From Ruditapes philippinarum (taxonomy: Eukaryota): 64,000 nt of DNA. The stretch is taken from positions 62,001 through 126,000 of the forward strand of contig NW_026867332.1 of the NCBI RefSeq assembly GCF_026571515.1. Direction: 5' to 3'. Below are positions 6,899 to 39,963 of the stretch, piece after piece; within the stretch, counting starts at the first letter, position 1; each line of letters opens with the position of its first letter. The notes below the pieces were generated by a model. That model saw only the letters and a list, made by a program, of their open reading frames with translations. It searched no databases and was not told the origin of the DNA. A program made the translations under genes and the position numbers.

Positions 6899-9800
6899 AT
6901 GTGTACTGCCGCGGATAGTTTTCAACAAGACTTAGTGGAGAAAAAGGTCTTGGAATATAGAACACAGTTATGTCGGGTTATAAACGCTCCGAACGTATTG
7001 CGCTGGATGCCAGGTTTTCTCTCGACAGGTACATATACACTTGTAAATGACTTCCATGCAATGTTAATAATTTCACAGGACAAATGAAACTAAATATAGA
7101 ATATGGATAGCTCATCAGTTGATGCACATATTTTTATTGGGAAACCAAGAAATAAGTTAAATCCGTGGTTACATTCACGCGAAAAAGTGGTTGTGGTGTT
7201 GGGAGGTTTCAAGTAGGGCCTATAAGTGATTAAGCCACAATGAATTTACCAGAGGACAGTTAATGCAGCCACCGCACCTTTCCTGGGCATGCTGTCATGA
7301 ATTGAAAACAGTTTACATCCGCTTCTGCACTTAGCTAGTGCGAATGACCGTAGAAAGGATTTCATGACTAATCAAAAAACGAAAGTAGGTCACTTTGCAC
7401 GTACCGTCCGGGAATCGGACCCGGGTCGCCCAATTCAGAGTCCAACACCATTGAGCTAACCAGACTGCTGTATTAAAAATGAAGACCCATGTATTACCTA
7501 TCTATCTATATTTCGTCACACTGAATAAATTTAATAGGGGTGGTTCGGCGCAATATAAATATAACTATCCGAGCCCCTGAGGGTCAAGTAAGTTCGGGAT
7601 TATTAAATCATTTCAACAACAGCTGTAAAGTTCTATCCTGTTTATATACTGATCCAATCTTCAAATAAGGTTGTTACAACAAGTAGATTCGATAAGTACA
7701 AACCAACACTCTGAAATAAGTATATATATAACAATATGTAAATATAAAGTAAAATAAAGTAGAAACAATGCATTACATCTGGAATATACGATAATATCGT
7801 ATGTCCCAGATTACATGAATAAATAATTCATATCTTATGTTCTAATCTAGAACATAATCAATTACATGTCTAGTGGCCAATTTAGTTCTTTACACTCAGC
7901 AACAGTCCTTAAATATAATATCATAGCTTATGGAATTATACACACAATTAAGATATTTTACCTTTTAAACAATACACAATACATCGCACATGTAACTTAC
8001 CATCTGAGGGATGAGTGCAGTACATCAATCTAATTATTACCTCTCTGACTATCACACCAGTGACTGTTAAAATTTAAGTTACATTAAATAAATTTCATAA
8101 AAAAACTAAATAGCGACAATTCATTAATAAATTGGGTTTTATATCGACTCCAGGTCTTATTTTGGTGTCCAAACAACCAAAATGAGTTTTATTAGCATAA
8201 AAATAGGTAACCTCATTGTGGCGAAATGGAAAATACAATTTCTGTTTGCATGAGAAACTCCGCCTTCGGATCATCCGTACATCAATATTAAATCAACAAA
8301 CATGACTATTAGCGGCAGTCCTAATTTAACGGTATATTTCCGCATTGTAACGGATGTTTTCATACAAATTTAATCTTTTTACGAGATTATTACTTTTACT
8401 GAACCCCAGGTTTAGTGCACCGTGAAGCTTTAACGGTTAAAGTGTGTTTGCACAAGAAAATATCACATTTGCTGTGCTCCGGATAGCAACTAAAAAACTG
8501 TGACGTAGTGCATGCACGAGCTCATTATAGTCTTCATTTGCATGTTAAAATTCGTATACGAACTTTAGCGGTACCGTGGGGTTTCCCGTTTAAAATCCTA
8601 ATTTATGAACAATGTTTGATGAGATTTACAACAATACTATTAAACAGGTTAATGAAACTGTAGAATGTTTGATTTTTAGGCCGACGGCAAAATATTTTTA
8701 CATATTTATTTAATGTAACTTTAACTGTAAGGTTAAATATTAATAGTGAATAAAAGATGAAAGGTGATTTGATAGATACATGTCATTCTGAAACTCATAC
8801 TTATTTACAAAATTCACAATCAATGGACTGAACCAAAATAGAACAGAATCACAATAATGCAATTCTACATATTTACAATAAAGCATTTAGCAGCAGTCAG
8901 GATAAATACATACCAACTTAGGAAATAAAGAACTTGACCACAAACACTATTTTTTCTAACCTCTCTCCTTTACAACATAACAAAGACACAATGACTTTTT
9001 CCCACCAAGAAATTACATGACATAAAAATAGCTTAAAATCAATGATCCGTGAACAAGTCATTTGAATTCTTAGAATACTGACCAATGTAAACATAAAATA
9101 AAATCAGTTAAAACCAATAGAGTAATCTCCCTTGAAAGGTATCAGACAAGACCGACGGATTTGTCTCCCTTTGCAAAATTATAAAATCCAACAGTAAAGC
9201 AAGAGTATTGTCCCTTAGACCTGATCCTAAAAATAAGACCCTGTTACATAAACACACATTATTTTAATGCAAACAATCCAGCTCTCGTCGTGTTTTATCT
9301 TAATTAGAGTACGCTTTCTTTGGTAGATGCGTTTCTTTTCTTTTTCTTGTACTTTTCAGACCTTTTTTACTTTTCAGAGTTTAAATGATTGACATTGAAT
9401 TATTTTTTATAGTTTATAATGAAATGAGCATATTTATTTGCATTGCATGACTTTTATCAACTTTAATTATAGCGGATGAGAGAGAAATTGAATCAGTAGA
9501 TTTACAATCGCATGAACGGGCAGCTTTCATTCTCCTTAAGCAAATTTCTGCATGCATTGGATCGGGAAAATGGGAGGCATTTCTCGAAGCTCTAAGGAGG
9601 GCAGGTAAATTGTTTTTAAATAAGTCAATTATAAAAAAACCAACACATTTCTATACGTAGATCGAGGATACTTGTAATTCTAAAGAAAAACGGCTAATTA
9701 TCAATGCCTTAACGTCCTTAAACTTTTCAACAATTTTGACAAGTTTTTTTATCCGATTTCCAAAGTTCATGCTTCTTATTATTTTCTTAATCTCATGCAC

Positions 9801-12800
9801 GCATATGTTATATTTAAACTCGAAAAACATTCAGTTTTAGATAGGGATATACAGCTAGTTAATTGTTTCACTTTACTTGATTCATCATCGTTTATATTTT
9901 CTTCAATACAGAATACCCATATTTGGTATCTTTATTGGTTTCAAATCAAACTCCAGAACAATGTAATCATCAAAAGAAGATCTTGCAAATTTTTGCGCCA
10001 TATTTGGAATTACAGATAGAGCCATGTGACCTCATTACACATTTCTTTTCGTCAAATCTGATCAATAAAAGTGACATGGAAGAAATACAGGTAAACTAAT
10101 AGTACATATAGCACAATAGCACATGCATATTAGATCTAGGCTTGAACCGAAGACATGCATCCAAATTAGAACATACGAAATATATAGTTTAATTGGTACC
10201 ATATGTGTTTAAATCTGTACACATATGTTTAAATTTGTAATAGTGTAATAAAAAAGTACACAATTTCTTAATGCGAAAGCTAGGACTCTTTGCACCGTCT
10301 TCATATTTTGCAAGTTAGTGGCGATTATTATAAAAAATCAATTGAATAACGTACACAATGAAATTACAACTGCATTTAAAAGAACTTCAAAACTTTATAT
10401 GAAACGCCATGCACTTCTTTGCAATTATAGGCATGCCAAAGGAGTCGAGGCTCTGTTGCTGCGACGATATTGATGTTAGATTGCATACAGCGTCGACAGG
10501 CACCATCTAAGTGGTACACTGGTTTCCTTAAGATTCTTTATCAGAAAGGATTCAAAGATATTGTTCATGAGATGGAGCCTGAGTTTAGTCTCGATTGTGA
10601 AATATTGAAGATACCGAAGCTTCTAGTCACTGGTTTGTTATCCTGATTTTTTTTCCAATTGAAGTTAAAAGATAGATGAACAGACGTACAGACCGAATGC
10701 GGTGTTTTACCATAACCTGTTCAATCCATTTACAAAACACTCAAAAATATCCAAAAATAGTGAAAATCATTGAAAGCAATTCAACACCGTAAAATGATAG
10801 TTTGACAAGCTAAGTTCGCTCGTGTCTGATTCGGTCGCTAATTAGCCAATTAAGGGAATCCACAATCATGGCAAACTGTACGTAACATATAAAGATGGTT
10901 AGGTACTACACATTTTTTAGAACTTAAAACACCCAGCCTTGTAAGAATACAACTACTCACAATTGTTTTCCATAATAAGGTATTTTATTTAGTCTTACTC
11001 TGATCCCCTGTGCTTTAAATGTCTATTTCATAACCTTTCAAAGCTGTATCATGTACATAATTAACACTTCAATTTAAGATACATCCGATTCAGACATAGA
11101 CACAGATGAGTATGGTTGCTCCATAGAGGAGAAAATTGAAGCCAAAGTTAGATACTTTCAGTCTGAAATTACAGAACTTCTTAGCGTTGAAAAGATTGCA
11201 CCAGCCCTGTGTCAGTTGATTAGTTTAGGTATGTATGATTTATGATGGTATAACACTTTTTTGTTGCTTGGTAAAGTTATAATCTGATCTTACGTAATGA
11301 TGTCTTAAATACACGTGACTGTCGATTTAAATAAAAATTTGGTGGGGCTAATTATGTGATAACATATGTCAACTTTAATATCTTTATCAAATTTAATTTA
11401 GGTAAGATTTGTCGAATAATGCAAGATCAATTTTCTTCGAAAAAAGAGTCTATCGACAGTTTAATCGAAGAAATCATCAAATTGAGGAGCAAGACAAAAT
11501 GGAGGACATTTATCTGCTGCCTGAAAGAATCTGGTAAACTCTTATTCTCAAGAAATACAATGTATTCGTAACCATTTAGATGAACGAATCCTCCGGTATT
11601 TATTTGAAATATATACACACAAGTCATTCCAGGAAAGAACTATGAGACGTGCACAAACTCATACATGTCTTGTGATATTAAAAGAAGACGACACACAGTT
11701 TTCTCTTAAATTACTATTAGAATCAATGGACTAATGCTCTCTTTGTACAAAAATAGTGTTAACTCGTGTTCTTATTTCTAATAAAGGGCATTATTATTTA
11801 CGTTCCCTCAGCAGCTTAGTTAATGCACTGGCAGTGAAACATTCGACCGATGCGCATGGGAGTAGGGTAGACATTATTATGAAAGTCATCGATCTAAATT
11901 TTGCTCTTTTTTTATTCTTATGTAAATTTCATACCCTCGTGCCCTAGCTAGGTAATCCCCACATTTAATTTACCGGATCGATTTTCTGTTTCCTTGGTTT
12001 TTATTAACAAACTTATTTGGCTCATATAGCTTGAACTTTACTTTTATTTATTCAGTTGTTGTTTTGTTGAATTATTTTATTGCTGTTGTTTTAGATTATC
12101 CACACTTAGCAGAACTTTTATCCAAACCGCGAACGAACAAATGTCAAAGTAAAGAGAAAGCTGTATTAAGATTGTTTCAGCCAGTACTTGGAGAGCAACT
12201 TGAACCTATTGATCTTATATCACATCTTGAAAAAGATAATGCAATAAATCATCGAGATAAAGAGGAAGTACTCAAAACTCTTCATCAATCTGGAAAGACA
12301 GCCGCTTCCTTAGTTCTTATTGATTGTGTACAATGTCGATTGGCGCCTGCACAATGGTATAGTGCCTTTTTGAAAGCGCTTCATGCATGTAACCGAGATG
12401 ATCTTGTGGAAATAATAGATCCTGAGTATTTCAAGAAATACATGTATGATAGTTCCGGTAAGTTCTGCTTTAACAATATAATTATATCAATACTGCAAAA
12501 TATTTTAAAACAAAAGAGAAAAAGAATAAAAGAAGATTTAATCATTGACATGATTTTGAATCGCAATTTCTTAGCTCTTTATGTGAAACTGGATAAGGAC
12601 TTTTACTGTGAATCGACGAGGTGTACGCAATCACCAATATGTTTATTAACGTATTTTATTGGACAAAAAAAATACAATGTCTTTATTAAATGCAAACGCG
12701 TTTCGTAATCAGTTTTCCATTTTCAGTTTAATTCTATCATTTTTGATTTAACAACTAACTGTTTTTAAATATTTCAAATTCGTTCTTATTGTTTGCAGAA

Positions 12801-15057
12801 GTTGAGAAAGAAAGTGATGTCAATGAGGTAATTCCGCAAGAGGCCATCAATTTAGATGAGAGAATAGATGCTGCACACTGTCACATCTACAACTTGGAGA
12901 AATCTGCAAAACAGGAAGTAGTCAAGTTACAAAAACACTTTGATGCTTTGAAGAAAAGCATGTTTGAGCAAATAGAAAATAAATCGTTTGCATTGACAAA
13001 GAATCTTGAAAATATGACAGAAAGGTAACAAATTGTGCTTTTTACATAAATAAGAACCATACATTAAGACATCGTGAAACAACATTTCAGTTATGAGTGC
13101 ATTGCCACTAAATTTCGTATATCATAATGGATATCTTATATCATCTGAATGTGTTTGTGAACCTTGGTACACATTAACATTAGAACAGCCATTGAGATCC
13201 AATTGTAAGTAAGGATATTGATATTCTAGATGAAATTAGAATCACAACAATGATGTTAATGATTTAAGCGTGATGTTACTATTGTCTTCGTTATTGTCAC
13301 TTTGTCTTACTAACTTGGCCATATCGTTTGGCTCACTGGCTAGGTAGAACAACGAATTTTCGCTTATTCAATCCTCGAGCGAGACAGAATTTCTCCGTGT
13401 CAATTGATCTCAGTATTCTAATGATTATTTCCTGACAAATACATTTGATACAACTGACAAAGAAATTATATACTGGACAAGTAGTCGGTCATTTGCGAAG
13501 AAATTGGTAAATACCGGTTAGTTATCCATGAGAGTTAGATAGTCTGTTAAATCAAACGAACCCTTTTAACATTTTTTTTTCAGAACTCAAGACGCAGGTT
13601 TGAGGCAAGAATTCGAAACATGTCTCAAACGCGTGATGTCTACATCCTATACCCTTTGTGATGTTGATTCCTTCACAAAACTGACAAAACTGGGTGTTTT
13701 ACAAGAATCATATAATACGTCACCGATAAAACATACGTCTGACAGAAAACAGAATACAATAGAAAATAAAACAAAACCAGTTGCAAGCATATTTCAAGGA
13801 ACAACAGCGAATCGTCGTCGAAGATGCTTTTCGGAAAGTTCTTCTGGTTCTAGTTCATCATCAAGCTACTTATTTGTAACAAATCCAACGCAGTTATCGA
13901 CTTCATCAGATTCTCTAGCTATCGAAGAAGATAGTAGAGTAAACCATGTATCAAAAGTAAGATTTGCAGATGACAATGAAATGCTTCATGAGAAACATAA
14001 GAAAAACCAAAATCAGCAGAAAATAGATAGTAACAGTGATTACCTTTCTCAGTATGGAACGAAGAAGACCTGCAGAAAACGCAATTTTTCTGAATCTAGT
14101 GTGTTCTCCACCGATGCGTCGATAGTTTCATCTACCGACAGACCACCGTCCTCAAGTCTAACCGATTCTCTAACTGGAACATCTTCTTTGTCATCATCAA
14201 CAAAGACAGCAAGTGTCACAGAGAAGAAGGTTCTTATTGAACGCAGAGAATCGTACATTTTTCACCACGAAAAGGTTGTAAATTGTAAAACCAACTGTGT
14301 TTTATCTAGTGTTTGTTGCCTACCAAACAATAAAACAGTCCTTGTCGATCAATGTAACTGTTCTTTCCATATATATGGTAGGTCTAATATATGTGAGAAG
14401 TTGAAGAGTCCTAGATTTAAGAATTACATTCCTATATGTTTATGCTCTATAGGTGAAAACCACTTATATATTCTGTTTCGAACACGGGATTGCACAAATG
14501 TACTGGTACAGTGCAATTTACATGCATCGGATGTCGTATTTGTGAAGACAGTAGCCATGTCTGCAAAATGTAATGGGAAGCTGTGCTCAGTTGCAAGTGG
14601 AAATAACAATGTCGTAGCCTTTTGCATTGATAAACATATGCATGTCTTTTCAAAAGACGGTATAGAGACGAAAATTGTAAGCTGTGATATAAAGAATGAA
14701 AATGAGTGGTGGCCAAACTATTCAGTTGTTGATTCGCGTTGCGAATTCGGTTTCACTTATGACATTTATTCTAATTCTGTGTACTGTTTCTGTATATCAA
14801 CGGGTGAAATGGTCTGGAGAAAAAAGCTCCCAAATGTAGAAGGAATAACTTTGTGCGATGAGAGCATATATTTATCTATGAACGTTTCATATGCGATTGA
14901 AGTTTTGTCAAAGACAACGGGTGATTACGAACGCTCTATTACTGAAAACGTGCGACGTCCATTTGCCATGTCAAGAAGTCATGGCCATGATACCATTATT
15001 GTTACGCAATACCACCCGGAGGGTAAAAAAATTAATAGAACAATAAAATATTTTTAA
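6899..15057 (+). CDS. Four RIG-I/MDA5-like CARDs + coiled coil + Ser-rich linker + NHL-like beta-propeller; 9 coding exons, ~995 aa
   Basis: Exons 6899-7028, 9473-9604, 9912-10090, 10431-10632, 11079(or 11094)-11228, 11402-11533, 12095-12457, 12799-13024, 13584-15057. All GT-AG, phases consistent, 2988 nt open. CARD1-like: VLEYRTQLCRVINAPNVLRWMPGFLS..ERAAFILLKQI..GKWEAFLEALRRAEYPYL. CARD2-like: ILQIFAPYLELQIEPCDLITHF..LINKSDMEEIQ..GSVAATILMLDCI..KWYTGFLKIL. The pair repeats in exons 5-7. The C-terminal ~270 aa has beta-strand repeats like mollusc TRIM-type propellers. Confidence 0.85.
7190..7470 (-). mobile_element. tRNA-derived SINE (Meta/MESC-like central domain)
   Basis: Reverse B box (gggaatcggacccgggtc), reverse A box (ttgagctaacc), and central gaatgaccgtagaaaggatttcatgactaatc. 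Confidence 0.65.
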
Positions 15058-19956: not shown

Positions 19957-20197
19957 CTTTAATCATTGGACCGAAATGAAAAGGTATGATAGCAAATATC
20001 TATATCGGTCGATGTTCAAATATGAACAATTGAAACACGTGCCCTTTGATAACGTAAAAGCTGAAACAATTACATTATGGGAGGTGTAGATGTACATGTA
20101 CTTGACATAACCATTGTTTAAAACTGCTTAAAAGAGGCTACACAACAAAATATTTAGACAGTAGCCATTGAAATCGTTTTACTTGAAATATAACAGG

Positions 20198-23100
20198 ATG
20201 GCAAAAATACTATGTTTGTTGATATTACTTGTTTCTTCATTTACATCTACGTTGAGTGAATCTGATCCGATCTCGAAACAAGGGTATACGCTGCCAGAAG
20301 GACATCCAGAACGCTGTTTTATTATGCTAGCTGGACACAAAGATCTTCGGCGTTTAGAAGCTCTCCCGGGTGGTGGCTGGGACAACCTACGTAATTATGA
20401 CATGGGCGCTGTTGTTCAACATACTTATCACAAATGTATGACAACAGAAGATGGTCGTTTTCTGATACCAGATAGTATAACGACGCTCCCCATTAAGACG
20501 AGTGGTGTTGACACGATTTCAGAGTTCTTTGATCACTGGGATAGCTACACGAGTGTTTCTTCAAGTTCAATCAATTTAGAGGTTGGGGTATTCGGGATAC
20601 CTATCGGCGGTAAATTTTCCACAGAGTATGGGAGTATAAAATCAAAGCAATTTTCTGAGAAAAGTTCGACAACTCGTATGCAAGTGAGTAAAGTTTAACA
20701 ATTTTATTCAAAGGAATATTTGTTTAACTATTCACTTCAAAATAAGTTAAAATTAAGAATTATTAATATGCCAATACAAAGCTTTCTTCCTTGACTGAAT
20801 TAAGTATTTCATGGGTATGCTTGATGATACGGCCTTATTGTCCTCATATTCAACAAAAAATTTGGTTTCATGAAAACTATACTTTTTATGATTTTAGTTC
20901 AGTTCATTTGAACATATAACTGCATTGGAATTCAAATTGTGTTAACCGATTTAATAACTTGAAAAAAATAATGAAATACTTCGATAATTATATCGTACGT
21001 TAAGCCGTTCCGCAAGTTCCCTTAAAACACCGCCGTCTGAACCATAGCCTATATTTGAGACAAGGTGGGCCATGAAAAACTCCAATGGAAAATGCTTAAC
21101 TCTGGCATAAGAGGTCACAACACTTTAATGTGTCAAAAGTTGTTTTTTTAAGATAATAGGCTAAATAAGACAGATCATCCCATGAACAATCAAGTTACTT
21201 CTGGAGACTTCAGGGATCGGTGCTTGGACTAATTCACTTTCTTGCATACATATATGATCTCCCACAGGACGTCCGCTTAAAAGTTTGCGTCTTTTTTTTT
21301 ATTATACTACTATGGTACGTGGTATCTAGAATGGGAATGTAGTTCAGCCCATTCAATTGTCAAGTAATCCATGTCACAAAAAGGAAACCCATACCAACTT
21401 ATTAATTTGTAACGACGGGCCAGTCTAGAGGCTGTACGTAATATCGATAAAATACCTGGGCGTGTACATATCTTATGTACTCTCAAAAAGCTGGGCGTGT
21501 ATATCTAATGGTTTCTTAAAGGTCCAGCACATAAACAGGTCAACCAAAAAAGGCAAACTAAACACTTGGCTTCTTATGTCGTAATATGAAATTAAACTCA
21601 GAACCTCTTAAGACCCTTGATTGACTACAACTAAAATATATGCATCTGATATCTGGTCCCCAATAGCCAAACTCAAGTTGATCAGATAAAATCTGTCCAA
21701 AGAAGATCTGCGCCTTAGATCAAATCTTTGGACGTACATCCAGTGTTACCAAGATGCTGGAGTCATTTAATTTGCACCAACTAGATCTTTGTCGTATTGC
21801 CTGTAGTTTCTCAATGGTTTGCACAACTAATGATATAGTCACCATCCCCATAGAATGTCATCTCACCCCATTAGGAAGAGCCTCCCGACATGCCTCCATG
21901 CTGAGTTACAGGTTAATCTAAGCCCAAACAGACTATTTTTTTTTTCAAAAACAGTTTTCCACTTCCCTGATGTTTTGATATATTGACACACTAGAGTAGT
22001 TCAATATTGCTGTTAGCCAAGTTGAGCATATCTCACCAATTTATTTTATTGGTATATTATGTTGTATATACTTAAGGTCTTTTATTTCTCTATTTAACTT
22101 TTCTTGACGCACGGGGGGGGGGGGTATCAGAATAGTAGTATGACTGTTTCAAGTAATTGTGGTAACACATATGACGCCGATGGAGAGCCGTTGGAGAGAT
22201 CACACCAGTGTGCTCATCAAAAAGGTTATATAAACAATTTTTAACATATTTCCTTTTTAGTTGCGCTATCGGAAGTACAATGTCATATTAGAAAACGGAT
22301 ACTCACTTCATCCTTCGTTCAAGAGCCGTCTCCAGAAGATAGCGGCACATTTGATGTTAGATCGAACACGTCTCGCTTCTTACGAAAGTCAGCTGCTTGT
22401 TCGAGACTATGGCACTCATGTGATAAACAACGTTGAGCTTGGTGCAACACTTGTCAAAGTAAGAATCTGATATGTTAATATTTTCTGATTAAATATATAA
22501 GAATTCGTACCATCAGAAAATAAATGTAATAAAAACAAAATTCAAACAACAATAAATAGAAAAGAAGAAAAAAAACCCCAAAAGAAAAAGTTGCAACTTG
22601 TATGCTAATAATATTCTGCTGTATTTAATAGACGGATCAAATTACAATATCGCAAGATGAAAGCTCTCAAACTGACTTTCGGCACATAGCAGCATCTGCA
22701 TCTGCTATTGTGTTCTTTGAAGAAGTTGGAATCCAATTCGGTGCATCGTATTCTAATTCAAAATTTGATGAAGCAGTTAACAAGTACAAACAATCAAGAA
22801 TGTCGTCTAAACTTTCAACACTTGGTGGAGATATTTACAAGTAAGTTCACGTCTTCCTGTGATACTGATCAATGTTTAATAACACGACGTCGCTTTGTTG
22901 AAAACTCAAAACGAGGGCTGCTAAAAATAATCGCGGAATTTAATCGTAGAACTCTTAAAATTAGACCCAATAAAAAGGTTAAAGTCACGAAACAAGACTT
23001 TTTCAATCAAATATATCGATACATAAAATAGTCACATACATTTATTAACACCATGAAACATACATTGCCGGGAATCAAATTGATACAACGTCATTCATAA

Positions 23101-26016
23101 GTCAAGTGAACCCATGCCTTTTTTGAATCCTGCGAGACAATGCATTCATTTCCGGGTCAAAGGGTCAAAATGATGAATCCAAGTTTCATTGACCATAATT
23201 ATGTGATCAATCCAAAAACATTTCGCCCTAGCGCCCAAGCCGACGTAGAAAACGAGTCGAATAGGCAACTCATCATACTTGTAACTGTCCTTCAAACGTA
23301 TGGGAACCTATCTGGCGCTGACCTTCGATATCACTAGGTCCTGATTCATAATAAGGGAAGGGTAAAGCAGGATACGCCTAGGTCATCAGAAATTACGCGT
23401 ACCGTAATTCGCCGAAAAGCATTAACCGTATCTTAAACGCCGAACAAAATTGACGTCGTCACAGTTGCTGGGTTTACTTGATGTGGATCGTCTTTAAGCG
23501 ATGTCCTGCCTTTAAAAAACAGTTCATGTCACTTGTTTACAATTGATTCGCTGAAAAACTTAATTGTAGCAGCCGACACTTCAATCATGTCTATGGAGTA
23601 GAGTCTCCTTTGGCAATTTACCCAGGCCAACACAAAAATTAAAAAAAAAAACTTCACGTGATTCTTCTAACTTTTGACGACAAGAAAGCACCTGCGAGAC
23701 TTAAAGGACAATGTTACCGTAACGAATATTGTAGTAACATCGTCTTCCAAAGAAATGTCTGAAGAAGATACTTGAACGTCTGCTAAGTTCGCGCCATTTT
23801 TTTTCTATTCCGAAAATGACGTTTTTGCGATATAAATGTAAGAATACAAAGAGTTACAAATGGAGCCCAGCATCAAGCAAAACAAGGGTTAAATTCTATG
23901 GTTACGAGCATTTTGGGCGTTTATTGAGAACGTACTTTGATCTTTACACAATCTATACGGATGACATTAATAGATAATAACGATAAATATAGAGATAAAA
24001 TATTAGAACATAAATAAAAGAGAGTAAATGCAGAATATCTTAAACTCATCGAACAGCTCCCTTGTACAACTTTATACATAAATATTAACGTCGCGTTGTC
24101 ACAAACCATATACTTTCAAATTTACACGAAAATATGATATGATTTCATGTGAATTAGGAATTGAAAATAAATGAACAACGCCTTATAACATGTATTATGC
24201 ATTATGCCCACTATTGAAAAGATATTTCTTTGGTGTTTTTCACTATTCCTTCTTGATTATATTTTATGACAAACGACTTGTAGTCATTGACAGTTTTTTT
24301 ATGTCAATATGGAGGTGACTGCAAATTTCTTTGCTTTTGTGATCTACGCTAAATAGAAGTTGATAGACAAATTTAACTCTCAAATTGTTTTTTAAAAATC
24401 AGCTGTCACATTTTTTACTTACAACTCAAGTTTTTTATTTCAAGTATGAAATTATATTTTTGCAGCTTTCTTTTGCCATCATACTGTTGTAGAAAAGTAA
24501 TTTAATTCATTTTCTTCTTTTCAATTTTAAAATGAAATCAGATGTCTAATAAAATCTAATAGGATAAAAGTTACATGTACGTATATTTGTTATTGTTTTT
24601 TCCAGACCAACACAATTTTCTGCTGAAAACTGGAGCAGCTCGATTGAAAACAATCTTGTGCCACTAGATAGATCGGGGGACCCATTATATTTATTCGTTA
24701 ATGAAAACAACCTACCTGGTATACCAGAGTACATTATAGAAAGAGTTCATGCCTATGTCAAAAAAGCTGTTTATCGTTATTACATACAAAATGTACATAA
24801 AGGATGTACGGTACGAAACGCGCCAAATTTTAGCTTTCAGGCTAACGTTAATGATAGTACATGTGATCCGCCTAAGACAAATTTTACTTTTGGGGGTGTT
24901 TATCAAACGTGTTCGAACACAGGTTATGTAAATCTATGTGATGGAATGTCTGTAAAGAATCCATTAACTGGTGACTTCAGTTGCCCAAACAACTACGAAG
25001 CTATTCGCATCAACAGCGGAAAAAAGACCCAACAAAGAAATAGAGCTGTGGTTACGAAATGTGGCTGGTTTAAAAAGTGTGCCAAAAATGTTATAGACAC
25101 TGCAAGTGCCGATTATGAAGCATATTGGTGTGCTAAAATCGATACAAGCAGTCCCGGTGGATATATGTTTGGCGGTTTGTATACCACACATACACATAAT
25201 GTGGTTACACAAACAAGAGAATGTCCCACATACTTTACTTCGTTAACTATACTTGAAGACCTAACTATATGTGTAAGCGATGACAACGAACAAGGTTCAC
25301 AATTTAATCTTCGTTTCGCAGGCTTATTCAGCTGTGTTGGAGGAAATCCAATGGCATTGGACTCTAGTAAAAGAAGAGACAGAAATTATCCCAACTCCTG
25401 TCCAGAAGGGTATAGCCAACATTTAGCGGATGTAGATGACGGATGCGAGATAAATTATTGCATACAATCCGGCGCAATAGCAATGGAACAATTACCGAAA
25501 ATAAAGTTACCTCCCTATATGTCAAGACCTTTAGACATACCACAGGAAGAGACAGAAGATGATTCGTCAGTGACCATTTTCAGTAGTGATGGTACCAGTT
25601 GGTCTTCTTTAGAGGATGAAGTTGTTAAAGCAGCTTCCAGTAACAACACTTTAACATTTGAGTTTGCAAAACAAACAGCACTCAATATCCCTTACATCAA
25701 ATCTTTGGTTATGGCAAATGTATCCAGCGAATTTATTACTAATCTTGGGAGTGGAAACATGTTGGACGAGTCAGATGTTAAACAGTCTGCACTGAAAATG
25801 ATACACAACCAAAACAATTTAAAACTTGACAAGGAAAGTTCTCCAGTTCTGAGTAATGCACATGATGAAACTAGCAAAAACCATAAGCAGGTTTCTACTG
25901 TTACAGTTGCGGTAATATCTGTTAATGGGACAATTCTCTGTGTGCTGATAGTATTAGGCATAGCATGGGCAATCAGACGTAGAAGAGGTGCAGCGTTACC
26001 ATATCAAAAGATTTGA
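20198..26016 (+). CDS. MPEG1: Perforin-2 / macrophage-expressed gene 1 (MACPF + P2 domain + TM), paralog A, 4 exons, 767 aa
   Basis: Exons 20198-20683, 22261-22458, 22632-22840, 24606-26016 (2304 nt). Signal peptide; LEALPGGGWDNLRN, TTEDGRFLIPD, RDYGTHVI, DRSGDPL, FTFGGVYQTC, KNPLTGDFSCP, FGGLY, CPEGYSQHLA; TM helix and short tail RRRRGAALPYQKI. Confidence 0.96.
21060..21960 (+). mobile_element. Heavily decayed CR1/L2-like LINE reverse-transcriptase fragment in MPEG1-A intron 1
   Basis: Frame-broken remnants reading WKMLNSGIRG, IKYLGVYI, GFLCRNMK and YASDIWSP, in RT C-terminal order. Confidence 0.55.
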
Positions 26017-31810: not shown

Positions 31811-32421
31811 AAGCACGTCTGTTGGCCACATAAAAATGAATTATGAGCCCATAGTGCTCAAAAGCCACACGTCTCCTTATGACAAAAAAAAGATATGTAT
31901 TTGGGCTCAAGCAAAATAGACCGCTCCCCCCCCGAAGGTTTATTTAAAATAAAGTCCCGAACCCCTTTCAAAAATTGTTTGAATGTATGGGTTTCAGTGT
32001 GCTAATTTTTGGGATTATATATGAATTTGGGATTTAAATAATTTTATGTTAAAAATGGAAATAAATAATTTATCATTTTAAAAAACAAAGTTGTTTTTTT
32101 TCTTTTTAAATTTACCCTTTAAATGAAATTTTGGGATAGATCCCATAGTTTATTACTCTTAACTCCTTTAAGCGACAGGTTTTGTAAAATTTAAAGGTTT
32201 TTTAAATACAGGGAAAAAGGCCCCGCAAAGATGTTTTTTTGTAAAATTTTTTCATCAAAATATAGCTAATAAAAAGATATTAAACAACTTCAACTTTATT
32301 CTGCATTTAAATCCAGGAAAAAATCTATTATATTTAACAGTACATAATTCCGCTCAAACAGTGTCATTTTTCATATCTTATTAACAAATCACGTCTTTGA
32401 AAGAGAACAATATAAGTTTAT

Positions 32422-34086
32422 TTAATCGTCGGTTTCCGAGTCACTAAATTCATCATCACTGTCCTCATGATCATCATCGCTATCATCGCTTTCAGCACCA
32501 TCAGAGTAAAATTCTTCAAGAAATGCCTCAAAATAACTTTTGTATTTTCCCACTGTCAGGCGAACAGCACGTTCGAGTTCCATCTTTTGTAAATATTTCT
32601 CCACAGACTTCATTATTTTGGTATACACATGTCCTCCTCTCAATTTCAGTATATAAGATAGGAGAGTAGTAAACTTTTTCATAAACACATGAATGTCTTC
32701 TTCGCGCAGTTTTTTATTTGCTTTCTCCTCAGCCTCATTCTCAGAAAGTCCTTGTGTTACATATTTCTGTACTTTATCTTGCCATTTTTGAATATTTGTT
32801 TTCTTCGTTAACTCGGCAAGTTCGTTATAGACTTCATTTTCACTATCTTTGTTCGTCGCACTGCTATCTTCATCATAGCCGCATTTTACCCTCTTGGTGG
32901 GTATGACATCTTCGTCTAAAGTTTCACGCTTCAGTGATTCTTGCTCAGGACACCAAAGTTTTACATGATTTTGAAGGTCATGTACGTTTTCAAACATCAC
33001 ACCGCAGTCGTCACAAGCAGGCATTGTCACTTTGTTTGAATAGTCTAGTTTTGGCTCTGTAGGAAATTTCTGATTTTGGTCAGAATTATCTTCTCTGTTG
33101 TGCTCTGGAAAATACGTCCGCACAGTTTGAATGTCTCCTTTTAAATGATGACTTTGATAAGCTGCATTTTCCTTTATACTAAATATATTAGTGCGCATGC
33201 GCATTGCTTCCGATGTGGTTGGTTTTAAGTCTAGAATTAGATATCCGTATGGCTGGCTTACAGCACTGTCAAAAATATCTTATCATTTCTTTAAAATTTG
33301 AGGGGTACATCTGCCTTGCCAGAGTTGCAATGGGCTGCATATCTACCGGGTTATTAAAGAATACCAAGTAATGACAATTTCTGCGCTGTGTTGGATCCTT
33401 ACTCAAATACAAGTTTTGATTTAAGGCAATCACTGATAGATTCCTGTGGTGACTTCCTTCTGTAAATAGGTCTGTAACTCGTTGATCTTTCGCAGTTTCC
33501 GATGCCATATCGTCCAGAATAATAAGATTTCTGATAGTCGTCGTGTCAAGAAATTCATCCTTTTCCAAATGTAAAGGCACTCCTTTGATGAACTCTACTT
33601 TTGTTATGACAGATGCCTTGATTACATCATAGAGCGGCTGCCACCTTTTATACAACCAAATGATTCTTTGTGGTGATGGTTTTATCTTATTGAAGGCTTG
33701 TTGCAGTAACTGAACCACGAAGAAAGTTTTACCTGAAAACATAATACAAAAGCATAAAAAATATTTGATACACCATAACGTGACACAATTCAATTTTGTG
33801 CATTAAAATATTTAGGAAGGATAATAAATAAATAAAGGATAATAAATAAATAAATAAATAAATAAACATACGTACCACTGGATGTGGGTCCCGATACCAT
33901 ACATGTAAATGGATGTTGAAACTTGAACTCTTGCTGCTGCTGCTGCTGCTGCTGTTGCTGCTGGAGTGTATGCATACTGTAGTTCTGCTCTGTATGACTC
34001 TCAATGTTGTTTTGCTGCTGTTGCTGCTGCTGCTTTTGGAGTGTATGCATACTGTAGTTCTGCTCTGTATGACTCTCAATGTTGTT

Positions 34087-34145
<59 letters not shown>

Positions 34146-34192
34146 GTGTATGCATACTGTAGTTCTGCTCTGTATGACTCTCAATGTTGTTT

Positions 34193-34223
<31 letters not shown>

Positions 34224-34320
34224 ACATATACTCTAATTTTGGATGTTTTGTTTTGTAATGTCTTTTTAAGTCCTGTTCCCAAACGTAGTTTTTATCACAT
34301 AAATGACACTGGCAAGTCAT
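32422..34320 (-). pseudogene. Polinton-type A32/FtsK-HerA packaging ATPase, copy 1: two exons, N-terminal C2H2 + polyQ repeats, C-terminal ZnF/helical/acidic extension; one frameshift
   Basis: Exon 1 34320-33876 (MTCQCHLC..RHYKTKH..Qn..FKFQHPFTCMVSGPTSSG), intron 33875-33733, exon 2 33732-32422 (KTFFV..Walker B LIILDD..GSHHRNLS..NQN..RRNCHY..PYGYLILDL..RMRTNIF). Extra base near 33271-33275 relative to copy 2. Confidence 0.85.
33931..34221 (-). repeat. Coding compound minisatellite (CAG)n + NNIESHTEQNYSMHTLQ, 3 units
   Basis: Directly visible in ATPase exon 1, copy 1. Confidence 0.95.
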
Positions 34321-34397
34321 TTTGACGATGTTAACAGGTCCACGGTTCAGAGTGAAATGATTTGAGTTGACACTAAACCGCTTTTATATGTAGATAT

Positions 34398-35516
34398 TTA
34401 GAGATCCTGTAAGTCACTCTCCTTTATCCAGCTGTTGAATTTCCTTGGGTATCCCAACCATTTAACTAACACCTCAGTCAGTCCATTTCTTCTTCGTCGC
34501 TTTAATACTTTTTCCACTTTGAAAATATCATCACGACTTTTCTGCACCTTTTGTAGTTCACTGGAATAGAATGTTCCTTCCACTGAATCTCCATCATAAT
34601 CCACAACTTTGTATATTGCAATTCCTTACCGCAGATATCTCCTTTTTATTATGAAAATTTCTTCTGTCCATTTTTGCTGGTAATCTCGCTGAAATGTACG
34701 TCTGTTGCTGGAAAGTCTGACAAAGTCACCAACTTTGAATTTGAATGGCTTTGATCGTTGATGCTTTCTTTTCTTGCTCTGTGGTTTTAAAGAATCGACA
34801 TAAAGCCGCTTCCATATGGTGGCTTCATTGTTTGCAGTAACTTCATTTGGTAATTTCCCTCTCAAAGAAGAATGCGGTCTTGAGTTGTAGTTCCTGACTA
34901 AATCAGGTAAAATATCAAGATAATTGTATGTGCGTTTATGCGTGAAATATCTGTACATCAACGACTTCAAACTGCGTATCAATCTCTCGGCATAGTTAGC
35001 GTGTGTTATATTATGAGTGACGAAGTGATGGATTCCTTGTTTGTTGAGAAATGATCTCACCCATCTGTTTTTCCATTCGCTACCTGGGTCTGTTCTCACT
35101 TCTTTCGGCTTGCGTCCTGACTGTAATATCTCTTTAAAGCCATCTATTATAGAATATCATGTTGTTTATTCTTCAGTGGAACCACCCATGCATAACGAGA
35201 AAAAACGTCAATGGCAACGAATAAATATCTAATTTGGTCATTTTCTTTTGCTAAACTGGATACATCTGCCAGGTCAATGTCCCAAAGAAAATCTAGGCCT
35301 TGTGATATTACTTTTCTTGTCTTAAATTTATAACGCATTGGTCTCTGTAAACTGCATGTAAGCATCCACATTCTGCAACCACTGTCTTATAGCGTGAATA
35401 CCAACTTTGTATTTACCTTCCTTCTTCAAGAATTTGTAAATTTTTTCAGGTCCTGCATAACTTATAGGACTGTTCAAGTCAAAGTAAATATTTTGCAAGT
35501 GATCTTTCCAACTCAT
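34398..35516 (-). pseudogene. Polinton retroviral-like (rve, DDE) integrase with C-terminal chromodomain, copy 1, disrupted
   Basis: MSWKDHLQNIYFD..LWDIDLAD..IDVFSRYAWVVPLKNK..RTDPGSE..YAERLIRSLK..YNSRPHSSL..FKVGDFVRLS..WTEEIF..FYSSELQKV, then chromodomain VEKVLKRR..LVKWLGYPRKFNSWI. Frameshifts near 35355 and 35155; nonsense codon at 34626. Confidence 0.92.
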
Positions 35517-35678
35517 TTTCATAAAATGACAAGATATTAAAAATGCACTCGCATTATATGAGGATAAAGTTACACTCCTTATATAAACATTTACATCATG
35601 TCGTGAAATAGTTAACAAGTTATTTTGAATTATCTGATGTTTTCTTCACCTGCTACAATAAAGTGAAGTACCTATTGA

Positions 35679-35802
35679 CTGGGATATCGTATGTCCCAGC
35701 TATTGATAAGTTTACATGTTTAAACTTGTTTGTCTAAAACTGGGACATACGATAAGGGGTTATCGTACATCCCAGTCTAAAATTAGCACTTACTGGGAAC
35801 CC
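35679..35802. repeat. Inverted-repeat cassette or candidate element terminus upstream of the integrase (second copy 39102-39225)
   Basis: TATCGTATGTCCCAG (35685-35699), its exact reverse complement (35740-35754) and TATCGTACATCCCAG (35761-35775); ends CTTACTGGGAACCC followed by TTA. Confidence 0.75.
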
Positions 35803-35825
35803 TTAGTGCGGAAACAGAATATGTG

Positions 35826-37525
35826 TCATCCATCATGCAGCAGAGCTATCATTTTAGAGTAAAATTCTTCAAGAAATGACTCAAAATAACTTTTGTATTT
35901 TCCCACTGTCAGGCGAATAGCACGTTCGAGTTCCATCTTTTGTAAATATTTCTCCACAGACTTCATTATTTTGGTATACACATGTCCTCCTCTCAATTTC
36001 AGTATATAAGATAGGAGAGTAGTAAACTTTTTCATAAACACATGAATGTCTTCTTCGCGCAGTTTTTTATTTGCTTTCTCCTCAGCCTCATTCTCAGAAA
36101 GTCCTTGTGTTACATATTTCTGTACTTTATCTTGCCATTTTTGAATATTTGTTTTCTTCGTTAACTCGGCAAGTTCGTTATAGACTTCATTTTCACTATC
36201 TTTGTTCGTCGCACTGCTATCTTCATCATAGCCGCATTTTACCCTCTTGGTGGGTATGACATCTTCGTCTAAAGTTTCACGCTTCAGTGATTCTTGCTCA
36301 GGACACAAAAGTTTTACATGATTTTGAAGGTCATGTACGTTTTCAAACATCACACCGCAGTCGTCACAAGCAGGCATTGTCACTTTGTTTGAATAGTCTA
36401 GTTTTGGCTCTGTAGGAAATTTCTGATTTTGGTCAGAATTATCTTCTCTGTTGTGCTCTGGAAAATACGTCCGCACAGTTTGAATGTCTCCTTTTAAATG
36501 ATGACTTTGATAAGCTGCATTTTCCTTTATACTAAATATATTAGTGCGCATGCGCATTGCTTCCGATGTGGTTGGTTTTAAGTCTAGAATTAGATATCCG
36601 TATGGCTGGCTTACAGCACTGTCAAAATATCTTATCATTTCTTTAAAATTTGAGGGGTACATCTGCCTTGCCAGAGTTGCAATGGGCTGCATATCTACCG
36701 GGTTATTAAAGAATACCAAGTAATGACAATTTCTGCGCTGTGTTGGATCCTTACTCAAATACAAGTTTTGATTTAAGGCAATCACTGATAGATTCCTGTG
36801 GTGACTTCCTTCTGTAAATAGGTCTGTAACTCGTTGATCTTTCGCAGTTTCCGATGCCATATCGTCCAGAATAATAAGATTTCTGATAGTCGTGTCAAGA
36901 AATTCATCCTTTTCCAAATGTAAAGGCACTCCTTTGATGAACTCTACTTTTGTTATGACAGATGCCTTGATTACATCATAGAGCGGCTGCCACCTTTTAT
37001 ACAAACAAATGATTCTTTGTGGTGATGGTTTTATCTTATTGAAGGCTTGTTGCAGTAACTGAAACACGAAGAAAGTTTTACCTGAAAACATAATACAAAA
37101 GCATAAAAAATATTTGATACACCATAACGTGACACAATTCAATTTTGTGCATTAAAATATTTAGGAAGGATAATAGATAAATAAAGGATAATAAATAAAT
37201 AAATAAATAAATAAACATACGTACCACTGGATGTGGGTCCCGATACCATACATGTAAATGGATGTTGAAACTTGAACTCTTGCTGCTGCTGCTGCTGCTG
37301 CTGCTGTTGCTGCTGGAGTGTATGCATACTGTAGTTCTGCTCTGTATGACTCTCAATGTTGTTTTGCTGCTGCTGCTGCTGCTGCTGCTGCTTTTGGAGT
37401 GTATGCATACTGTAGTTCTGCTCTGTATGACTCTCAATGTTGTTTTGCTGCTGCTGCTGCTGCTGCTGCTGCTTTTGGAGTGTATGCATACTGTAGTTCT
37501 GCTCTGTATGACTCTCAATGTTGTT

Positions 37526-37563
<38 letters not shown>

Positions 37564-37623
37564 TGCTGCTGCTGGAGTGTATGTATACTGTAGTTCTGCT
37601 CTGTATGACTCTCAATGTTGTTT

Positions 37624-37658
<35 letters not shown>

Positions 37659-37755
37659 ACATATACTCTAATTTTGGATGTTTTGTTTTGTAATGTCTTT
37701 TTAAGTCCTGTTCCCAAACGTAGTTTTTATCACATAAATGACACTGGCAAGTCAT
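35826..37755 (-). pseudogene. Polinton-type packaging ATPase, copy 2: exon 2 open, exon 1 frameshifted, acidic tail lost at the duplication junction
   Basis: Exon 1 37755-37225, intron 37224-37082 (143 nt, GT-AG), exon 2 37081-35826. Same motifs as copy 1. Confidence 0.85.
37280..37656 (-). repeat. Coding compound minisatellite (CAG)n + NNIESHTEQNYSMHTLQ, 4 units
   Basis: One more unit than copy 1 and different CAG run lengths. Confidence 0.95.
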
Positions 37756-37832
37756 TTTGACGATGTTAACAGGTCCACGGTTCAGAGTGAAATGATTTGA
37801 GTTGACACTAAACCGCTTTTATATGTAGATAT

Positions 37833-38939
37833 TTAGAGATCCTGTAAGTCACTCTCCTTTATCCAGCTGTTGAATTTCCTTGGGTATCCCAACCATTTAA
37901 CTAACACCTCAGTCAGTCCATTTCTTCTTCGTCGCTTTAATACTTTTTCTACTTTGAAAAGATCATCACGACTTTTCTGCACCTTTTGTAGTTCACTGGA
38001 ATAGAATGTTCCTTCCACTGAATCTCCATCATAATCCACAACTTTGTATATTGCAATTCCTTGACGCAGATATCTCCTTTTTATTATGAAAATTTCTTCT
38101 GTCCATTTTTGCTGGTAATCTCGCTGAAATGTACGTCTGTTGCTGGAAAGTCTGACAAAGTCACCAACTTTGAATTTGAATGGCTTTGGTCGTTGATGCT
38201 TTCTTTTCTTGCTCTGTGGTTTTAAAGAATCGACATAAAGCCGCTTCCATATGGTGGCTTCATTGTTTGCAGTAACTTCATTTGGTAATTTCCCTCTCAA
38301 AGAAGAATGCGGTCTTGAGTTGTAGTTCCTGACTAAATCAGGTAAAATATCAAGATAATTGTATGTGCGTTTATGCGTGAAATATCTGTACATCAACGAC
38401 TTCAAACTGCGTATCAATCTCTCGGCATAGTTAGCGTGTGTTATATTATGAGTGACGAAGTGATGGATTCCTTGTTTGTTGAGAAATGATCTCACCCATC
38501 TGTTTTTCCATTCGCTACCTGGGTCTGTTCTCACTTCTTTCGGCTTGCGTCCTGACTGTAATATCTCTTTAAAGCCATCTATTATAGAATATCATGTTGT
38601 TTATTCTTCAGTGGAACCACCCATGCATAACGAGAAAAAACGTCAATGGCAACGAATAAATATCTAATTTGGTCATTTTCTTTTGCTAAACTGGATACAT
38701 CTGCCAGGTCAATGTCCCAAAGAAAATCTAGGCCTTGTGATATTACTTTTCTTGTCTTAAATTTATAACGCATTGGTCTCTGTAAACTGTAAGCATCCAC
38801 ATTCTGCAACCACTGTCTTATAGCGTGAATTTACCTTAAATTCCTTCTTCAAGAATTTGTAAATTTTTTCAGGTCCTGCATAACTTATAGGACTGTTCAA
38901 GTCAAAGTAAATATTTTGCAAGGGATCTTTCCAACTCAT
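37833..38939 (-). pseudogene. Polinton rve-chromodomain integrase, copy 2, disrupted
   Basis: ORFs 38763-39041, 38582-38809 and 37833-38534 are consecutive pieces. It shares the frameshift at KNKQHD with copy 1 and has a private indel near 38830. Confidence 0.92.
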
Positions 38940-39963
38940 TTTCATAAAATGACAAGATATTAAAAATGCACTCGCATTATATGAGGATAAAGTTACACTC
39001 CTTATATAAACATTTACATCATGTCGTGAAATAGTTAACAAGTTATTTTGAATTATCTGATGTTTTCTTCACCTGCTACAATAAAGTGAAGTACCTATTG
39101 ACTGGGATATCGTATGTCCCAGCTATTGATAAGTTTACATGTTTAAACTTGTTTGTCTAAAACTGGGACATACGATAAGGGGTTATCGTACATCCCAGTC
39201 TAAAATTAGCACTTACTGGGAACCCTTAGTGCGGAAACAGAATATGTGTCATCCATCATTCAGCAGAGCTTTCATTTTACTTTAAATTCATAAAGTGTCG
39301 TCTAATCTAAATTATAGTTACAATATGTGTAGTTTAAATCACAGTTTTATTTTTTAAAAAAATGCCTCGAAATTTACGCTAGCTAATTTAGGTAACAAGG
39401 AAATTCCGTTGGAAAATACGGATCTAAAGATAGATGGAAATTCCAATGAAAAACCGGTTCCAACTGGATTCAAGAAATCTAAAAATAGCTCGATCCTGAA
39501 TCCTGAGGCAGAACTCTCATTTCCCTATATCATCATGTGACCCCTTCCGTTTCACTTCAACTCTTTGATATGCATTTGTTGCATCAACAATTACTAGTAA
39601 TTATTTTTCAGCAATATGGGGTTTTACAAAATCTTAGACTATGGAAAGGTATCATTTGAAATTGTGCAAGTCATTATGTATTGCGTGTTTTGTATGACTA
39701 AATACGTCAATAAATTCTATATATCTATCTATATTAGGGAAAACCGATACGCTTGAATATTTCTTTTGAATTGATCTGACATGTTGTAATGATAATACTT
39801 ATATCTCTGCTCATTATAGTTATATAGTTCGACGTTTAAATGTTAATTTATTAAACAATGGAATAAAGTTGAATAAATTAGTCTTAACGAGAATACCTTA
39901 ATTTATAGTCGTATATACTATTGGTATTTGGTGTTGTTAAAATAACGGTTGTTCAATAACGGA

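Follow-up and report, generated by a model that had tools for sequence, protein, structure and literature searches.

A predicted helicase-less four-CARD protein with an NHL-like beta-propeller encoded in the genome of the clam Ruditapes philippinarum

Gene structure and domain order

The gene LOC132735758 of the Manila clam, Ruditapes philippinarum, lies within a stretch of 64,000 nucleotides (nt), hereafter the window, which corresponds to positions 62001-126000 of contig C15819 in an assembly of 1.41 Gb and has 33% G+C and zero N. A preliminary description of this DNA had proposed that nine phase-compatible exons encode an open reading frame (ORF) of ~995 amino acids (aa), in which four RIG-I-like receptor (RLR)-type CARDs, in the order CARD1-CARD2-CARD1'-CARD2', are followed by a coiled coil, a Ser-rich linker and a propeller. 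The nine proposed exons, placed on the protein by a script that compares exons with a protein, were colinear with isoform X1 of LOC132735758 (RefSeq XP_060578733.1, here P0024; 995 aa, "uncharacterized protein") and matched it exactly, with a single solution. All introns of P0024 were GT-AG (8/8), and the junction phases were 1,1,0,1,1,1,1,2. Exons were searched singly and full-length analyses were run on database proteins. Features were assigned from the exon map, Pfam, profile comparisons and AlphaFold2 (AF2) models as follows.

6899..7028, + strand: exon 1 (coding part, beginning at the ATG), initial third of CARD1, aa 1-43; GT donor; aligns with RIG-I CARD1 from the N-terminus
9473..9604, + strand: exon 2, remainder of CARD1, aa 44-87; 132 nt, phase 1 at both ends; skipped in isoform X2
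9912..10090, + strand: exon 3, initial half of CARD2; positions 4-42 of the Pfam CARD_2 profile
10431..10632, + strand: exon 4, latter half of CARD2, then the beginning of an acidic linker; positions 45-91 of Pfam CARD_2, E = 1.8e-5
11079..11228, + strand: exon 5, acidic linker, then first third of CARD1' (exon map)
11402..11533, + strand: exon 6, remainder of CARD1' (exon map and profile comparison)
12095..12457, + strand: exon 7, the whole of CARD2' within one exon; Pfam CARD_2 E = 2.3e-12, 47 bits (cut-off, 28.2)
12799..13024, + strand: exon 8, bulk of a long amphipathic helix, candidate coiled coil (AF2)
13584..13644, + strand: first part of exon 9, where the helical region ends, aa 505-525 (exon map and AF2)
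13645..14274, + strand: middle of exon 9, Ser/Thr-rich basic disordered linker, aa 526-735
14275..15057, + strand: end of exon 9, six-bladed NHL-like beta-propeller, aa 736-995, and stop codon

The exon set, the order and RLR type of the CARDs, the Ser-rich linker and the propeller were thus as the preliminary description had them, and we regard this anatomy of CARDs, helix, linker and propeller as close to certain.

Homologues and integrity of the gene

A paralogue on contig C7804 (LOC132756054; X1, 961 aa) carried these exons in identical order, all on one strand and with every frame open, and was 51% identical to LOC132735758 in CARD2' and 27% identical in the propeller. Predicted proteins with the full-length architecture were found in Mercenaria mercenaria (LOC123527491, P0019; 1013 aa, with an overall identity of 60%) and Mactra antiquata (KAL4220903.1, P0003; 983 aa), and an uninterrupted ORF of 884 aa running from the CARDs to the propeller (P0008) was found on an assembled contig of 3217 bp. 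Since all genomic members have eight introns, this contig is most simply a transcript. The recurrence of one architecture in the C7804 paralogue, Mercenaria, Mactra and the intron-free 3.2-kb contig leads us to read the exons as one gene, and provides strong comparative evidence that LOC132735758 is intact. An alternative is that a CARD gene and a propeller ORF were merged in annotation, or that the gene is decaying or a pseudogene; exon 9 is indeed a long stand-alone ORF that metagenome gene callers report singly (P0001, P0006 and P0017). However, there is no ATG-initiated ORF from the 5' end of exon 9 (the listed ORF begins at TTG), splice sites are all canonical with compatible phases and zero stops, and the same exon order and open frames recur in the paralogue, at 27 to 51% identity, and in three other species. 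Together with the uninterrupted ORF of P0008, these findings make such an artefact highly improbable.

Upon comparison with the Mercenaria orthologue, the folded domains were 60 to 81% identical (highest in CARD2, at 81%; 63% in the propeller) and the helix and linker 48 to 49% identical, which is the pattern expected if purifying selection acts on both ends of the protein. The Mactra protein P0003 is named "ATP-dependent RNA helicase ddx58" in GenBank; it has CARDs and a propeller only, without a helicase, and the name was presumably transferred on the basis of CARD similarity. Four "hypothetical proteins" from JGI/IMG (P0001, P0017, P0023 and P0025) are single exons of clam four-CARD genes. 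Among these, P0023 was considered as a spliced transcript and rejected, as it consists of exon 8 alone.

The four-CARD proteins appear to be lineage-restricted, as they were seen in venerid and mactrid clams only, plus the transcript-like contig and several fragments without an assigned source. A word-indexed protein search with the four-CARD region returned three close relatives only, a result that says little about wider distribution. In the literature searched, no paper was found on the locus or accession names or on the domain combination. The earlier statement that the architecture is undescribed holds in that sense, with the qualification that the sequences are already in RefSeq and GenBank, where they are uncharacterized or misnamed. 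A survey of lophotrochozoan RLRs classifies these receptors, which have a C-terminal RNA-recognition domain, by domain architecture (PMC8998645); on that scheme, we would not expect helicase-less four-CARD proteins to fall within it.

A duplicated 2CARD region of the RIG-I/MDA5 type

In Pfam, full-length P0024 had four stretches of CARD_2 (PF16739) at 121 bits (cut-off, 28.2) and E = 2e-35 and also matched CARD (PF00619) at E = 2e-9. The best PDB matches of exon 7 were RIG-I 2CARD chains. Exons 1, 2, 5 and 6 and the last exon (485 aa) had no Pfam match when scanned singly, and exon 1 and exon 5 did not match each other in BLASTP; the CARD nature of the half-exons of CARD1 and CARD1' rests on the whole-protein Pfam result, the alignment with RIG-I 2CARD and profile comparison. 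A family profile built from six members matched mouse and human RIG-I 2CARD (6bzh, E = 7e-15; 4nqk and 4p4h, E of ~2e-11) and MDA5 2CARD (7dni, E = 8e-7). The alignments with RIG-I (residues ~9-160) and MDA5 (~20-197) were colinear from the N-terminus over both CARDs. No MAVS chain was among the PDB matches to the family profile at E <= 1.

Profile-profile comparison within the family paired CARD1 with CARD1' (98.6% probability, E = 9e-16) and CARD2 with CARD2' (99.9%, E = 4e-32), whereas CARD1 and CARD2 reached merely 83%. Because of these matches we read the four CARDs as a tandem duplicate of one 2CARD unit, and the profiles indicate that they arose by internal duplication of a RIG-I/MDA5-type 2CARD. 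The intron within CARD1 and that within CARD1' are at the same place and in the same phase. In the full-length AF2 model the region formed four helical bundles (residues 1-97, 102-195, 230-318 and 326-416), in a model whose predicted template modelling score (pTM) of 0.33 is too uncertain overall for domain packing.

Isoform X2 (XP_060578734.1, P0020; 951 aa), a computed RefSeq model, skips exon 2, and the exon 2 residues (aa 44-87) aligned with residues 36-80 of RIG-I in alignments with both the mouse and the human protein. A virus-induced human RIG-I splice variant that is missing residues 36-80 is not ubiquitinated by TRIM25 and is dominant negative (PMC2860555). The segment missing from it is that skipped in clam X2, with the differences that in X2 the three other CARDs stay intact and that X2 is known as a RefSeq computation. 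Provided that the human deletion arises by skipping of an exon, which "splice variant" implies, both introns flanking this CARD1 exon would be conserved between the clam four-CARD gene and human DDX58. Such conservation would be independent evidence of RLR ancestry and would hint that exon-2 skipping is an old regulatory device. The parallel also suggests that the CARD1 exon, which is skipped in the inhibitory human variant, is of ancient origin.

The CARDs might instead belong to a scaffold outside the RLR pathway, of the CARD9/CARD11 or Apaf-1 kind, which would nucleate a BCL10-like or caspase CARD for NF-kB signalling or cell death after the propeller has sensed a ligand. In support of this, CARD2' gave weak matches to CARD9 and CARD11 (E of 0.002-0.03, family profile versus PDB), the general CARD model PF00619 was matched, a CARD region followed by a long helix is an arrangement of such scaffolds, and families that join a death fold through a linker to a propeller form a recognized theme among marine invertebrates (PMC8195603). 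RIG-I/MDA5 2CARD is nevertheless by far the better match and is colinear over both CARDs (E = 7e-15 versus 2e-3), and the intron positions of CARD1 agree with the boundaries of the RIG-I splice variant, so that we consider a scaffold of this kind unlikely.

Domains that distinguish canonical RLR, TRIM and MAVS proteins are absent

The preliminary description had the protein lacking a helicase, a C-terminal domain (CTD) and a transmembrane (TM) anchor, which agreed with our results. Pfam gave only CARD_2 and CARD, with no DExD/H-box helicase in P0024 or in any exon, and the RIG-I C-terminal domain (RIG-I_C-RD, PF11648) was found neither in P0024 nor on contigs C15819 and C7804. At least 18 PF11648 loci were present elsewhere in the genome, most of them on one strand with a CARD_2 exon and 7-16 kb downstream of it, as in canonical RLR genes; the CARD exons of these loci were 26 to 35% identical to CARD2'. 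No TM segment was found in P0024 (maximum Kyte-Doolittle hydropathy over 19 residues, 1.19), and there was no RING or B-box in P0024 or in its homologues P0026, P0019 and P0003. The protein is thus not an RLR, as helicase and CTD are absent, not a TRIM, as RING and B-box are absent, and not MAVS-like, as it has no TM segment.

CARD_2-type exons, 24 to 35% identical to CARD2', were also seen on nine other contigs (C14123, C577, C2276, C15390, C8139, C12895, C6952, C943 and C5928), each with no RIG-I_C-RD match on the same contig. These may be other helicase-less CARD fusions or RLR genes split over contigs.

The helix and the Ser/Thr-rich linker

AF2 predicted one helix of 64 residues (443-506), followed by a second at residues 510-524. 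The long helix is amphipathic and its hydrophobic periodicity peaks at 3.6-3.67 residues, not at 3.5. A search of the helix and linker for homology to TRIM coiled coils was negative, as hhalign comparison with the TRIM71-like family (see below) aligned the propeller alone. Of the coiled coil proposed earlier, the amphipathic helix is thus present in the prediction, and homology to the TRIM coiled coil was undetected; self-association of the helix is plausible on the model. TRIM coiled coils are antiparallel. The preliminary description had argued that a coiled-coil dimer would present four 2CARD units, as in the RIG-I tetramer; an antiparallel coiled coil of the TRIM type would place the CARD heads at opposite ends, apart rather than juxtaposed.

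The linker (~210 aa) was disordered in the AF2 model (predicted local distance difference test [pLDDT], about 25), is basic (pI 9.2) with 31% Ser+Thr, and contains two conserved patches in which Arg is followed by a Ser cluster (alignment A3).

The propeller is related to bivalve TRIM71-like proteins

AF2, supplied with an alignment of 13 rows, gave a confident all-beta, six-bladed propeller of 23 strands for the last 281 aa (pLDDT, 86; pTM, 0.85). The top match in VIA-align was the NHL domain of TRIM71 (Z = 26.3; root mean square deviation, 2.7 over 248 aa), and six of the seven top matches (ranks 1-4, 6 and 7; Z of 24.3-26.3) were TRIM-NHL domains, namely those of TRIM71, Lin41, Brat, Mei-P26, TRIM2 and NHL-2. 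Foldseek TM-scores to NHL domains were 0.68-0.70, above those to seven-bladed WD40 proteins. Structure prediction and Foldseek thus returned the six-bladed propeller that had been expected, with NHL domains as the best matches. Against the Pfam NHL repeat (PF01436; cut-off, 20 bits), homologues P0008 and P0010 scored below the cut-off and P0013 scored 20.6 bits, but none of its repeats passed individually.

A HMMER search, exhaustive over 1.84 billion representatives, yielded only 15 relatives of the propeller, all of them four-CARD proteins, isolated last-exon ORFs, or proteins with RING, B-box, helical region and propeller (P0010 and P0014). One of the RING/B-box propeller clusters includes the Ostrea edulis "E3 ubiquitin-protein ligase TRIM71-like" (XP_048742604.2). 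When the four-CARD and TRIM71-like families were compared by hhalign, profile against profile, 252 propeller columns aligned (98.5%, E = 2e-15). In the clam genome itself, a third propeller paralogue (G000:C3684:727000-737350; L006 and L003) lies downstream of RING and B-box exons (L006 7485-7802 and 8044-8499, respectively). The protein atlas gave merely sub-threshold leads to mollusc NHL/B-box families.

The proposal that an RLR head took the place of RING and B-box on a TRIM-like scaffold consequently stands for the propeller, which is homologous to TRIM71-like proteins, and not for the helix, whose homology was undetected. Since the propeller is homologous to that of bivalve RING/B-box TRIM71-like proteins, it is reasonable to envisage domain grafting onto the C-terminal half of a TRIM-NHL-like gene, a reading supported for the propeller only. 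We infer that the duplicated RLR head was grafted before the venerid/mactrid split.

Two further observations concern the TRIM-like relatives. A second TRIM-like gene at C3684, head-to-head with the first and on the opposite strand (L006 3248-4873), has a single exon of 541 aa that encodes a RING and B-boxes together with a helical stretch and a tail rich in Ser and Arg. A protein of 521 aa in the P0012 cluster of TRIM-like propellers (P0047, MEW8548782.1), encoded on a 3.2-kb contig, bears the record name "MAG: hypothetical protein [Candidatus Thiodiazotropha sp.]"; as Thiodiazotropha are clam symbionts, the contig probably comes from the bivalve host and was binned with a bacterial metagenome-assembled genome.

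Genomic neighbourhood

Two tandem homologues of MPEG1/perforin-2, a MACPF pore-former, adjoin LOC132735758 in the window (20168-26016 and 39949-45143, both + strand), so that the four-CARD gene sits beside immune effector genes. In each copy, an N-terminal exon is followed by a large C-terminal one that has a TM segment at its end. MPEG1 chains in the PDB matched at E = 7e-73 and 8e-32, and Pfam gave no match on the MPEG1 exons at E <= 0.001. At ~32400-38550 (- strand), the window holds a block in two near-identical copies, with ORFs for poxvirus-A32-like packaging ATPases (33269-33793 and 35826-37142, - strand), integrase-like ORFs with a chromodomain (34626-35099 and 37833-38534, - strand) and poly-Gln/poly-Ser repeat ORFs. 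The contents of the block fit a Polinton-like element.

Proposed function

Signalling by RLRs is understood as sensing by the helicase and CTD coupled to output by the 2CARD, and the propellers of TRIM-NHL proteins are recognition modules, those of Brat, LIN-41/TRIM71 and Mei-P26 binding RNA. With moderate confidence, we propose that the LOC132735758 protein, taken to be cytosolic, is a ligand-regulated CARD signalling component, either sensor or adaptor, of the RLR/MAVS pathway. The propeller would be the specificity or input module, a role suggested by its conservation and by its relatives, the TRIM-NHL recognition modules; its ligand could be RNA, as for Brat, LIN-41/TRIM71 and Mei-P26, or protein. 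The helix would self-associate and serve as the oligomerization element, and the Ser-rich linker would act as a flexible tether that phosphorylation probably regulates. Clustering of the CARDs by ligand, or their release, would then allow homotypic CARD-CARD assembly with other CARD_2 domains; those of clam MAVS and of RLR 2CARDs are the likeliest partners, since the CARDs are of the RLR type and strongly conserved. Such assembly would feed or tune the mollusc RLR-MAVS-TRAF6/IRF pathway, and isoform X2, in which two thirds of CARD1 is missing, would either fail to signal or inhibit, in the manner of the human RIG-I variant. A working RIG-I-MAVS-TRAF6/IRF pathway is known in bivalves: in oyster, the CARDs of RIG-I bind MAVS, and signalling proceeds by way of TRAF6 and IRFs (PMC5557890).

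Several findings weigh against this proposal. The propeller had no match to PF01436 (window:14212-15054) up to E = 10 and is just 10 to 13% identical to RNA-binding NHL domains, so that RNA binding is not inferable from its residues. The similarity of CARD2' to CARD9 and CARD11 means that the partner may not be MAVS. Isoforms X1 and X2 are RefSeq predictions. Finally, a Mercenaria paralogue (P0027, LOC123527494) has four CARDs and the helix without a propeller and ends in a low-complexity C-terminus, reflecting either true loss of the propeller or an incomplete gene model.

The propeller-less P0027 would also suit a decoy or brake, in which helicase-less CARDs cap or sequester RLR 2CARDs or the MAVS CARD and the propeller and helix serve only localization or turnover. 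The lack of an RNA-sensing helicase or CTD points in the same direction, and CARD-only or truncated-CARD inhibitors are known, including the RIG-I splice variant (PMC2860555). A decoy, however, needs neither a duplicated 2CARD nor a conserved propeller of 260 aa, which is as conserved between genera as the CARDs, and two paralogues have been retained in each of two species. We regard a decoy as a possible but doubtful account.

A more specific form of the sensor proposal is that the NHL-like propeller is a pattern-recognition module for viral RNA or protein and the protein a helicase-independent, RLR-like receptor, whose helix-linked four-CARD heads, clustered by ligand, would directly nucleate clam MAVS filaments and whose exon-2 skipping would provide negative feedback. 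We put this forward tentatively. Were it true, the protein would be one of several "sensor bodies" that clams have joined to the RLR 2CARD head.

More generally, if the LOC132735758 protein is a ligand-regulated component of the RLR/MAVS pathway, the output head has been kept and duplicated and the sensor swapped for a TRIM-NHL-type propeller, which would make the 2CARD a portable module in bivalves. The protein is a candidate non-helicase input into the mollusc MAVS pathway, or a regulator of that pathway. Bivalves have greatly expanded families of innate immune genes and are subject to economically important viral and parasitic diseases.

Comparison with known systems

With RIG-I and MDA5, the clam protein shares a tandem CARD1-CARD2 of the Pfam CARD_2 type, and the exon boundaries of its CARD1 coincide with RIG-I residues 36 and 80. 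It differs from them in that the 2CARD is duplicated, in that it is without DExD/H helicase, pincer and C-terminal RNA-binding domain, and in that its C-terminal half has a helix followed by a disordered linker and then by an NHL-like propeller. This half resembles the TRIM-NHL proteins (TRIM71/LIN-41, Brat, Mei-P26, TRIM2 and NHL-2) and the bivalve TRIM71-like proteins, both in the C-terminal six-bladed propeller of the NHL type (Z of 24-26) and in the order of helical region, Ser-rich linker and propeller. Unlike these, the clam protein has no RING or B-box and hence no E3 ligase module, and its helix is not detectably homologous to theirs. MAVS-type adaptors have a single CARD and a C-terminal TM anchor, whereas the clam protein has four CARDs and no TM segment.

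A precedent for a death-fold domain in place of the RING on a TRIM-type protein is Pyrin (TRIM20/MEFV), an innate sensor; Pyrin has one PYD, a B-box and a B30.2/SPRY end, whereas the clam protein has four CARDs, no B-box and an NHL-like propeller. CARD9, CARD10, CARD11 and CARD14 likewise carry a long helical region after the CARD; in these proteins, that region governs oligomerization and filament nucleation. They differ in having a single CARD, far longer coiled coils, no propeller and BCL10 as partner, and the clam CARDs are far less similar to theirs than to the RLR 2CARD. In Apaf-1 and in the DED-TRADD-N-linker-WD40 families of marine invertebrates, a death-fold head is joined, often via a low-complexity linker, to a C-terminal propeller that is proposed or known to sense the trigger (PMC8195603). 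The clam protein differs from both in being without an NB-ARC/STAND ATPase or TRADD-N, in having a propeller of the NHL rather than the WD40 type, and in its RLR-type 2CARD head. The general design, in which a helical or low-complexity middle joins a death-fold head to a recognition domain at the C-terminus, thus has precedents in pyrin/TRIM20, CARD9/11, Apaf-1 and the DED-TRADD-N-WD40 proteins.

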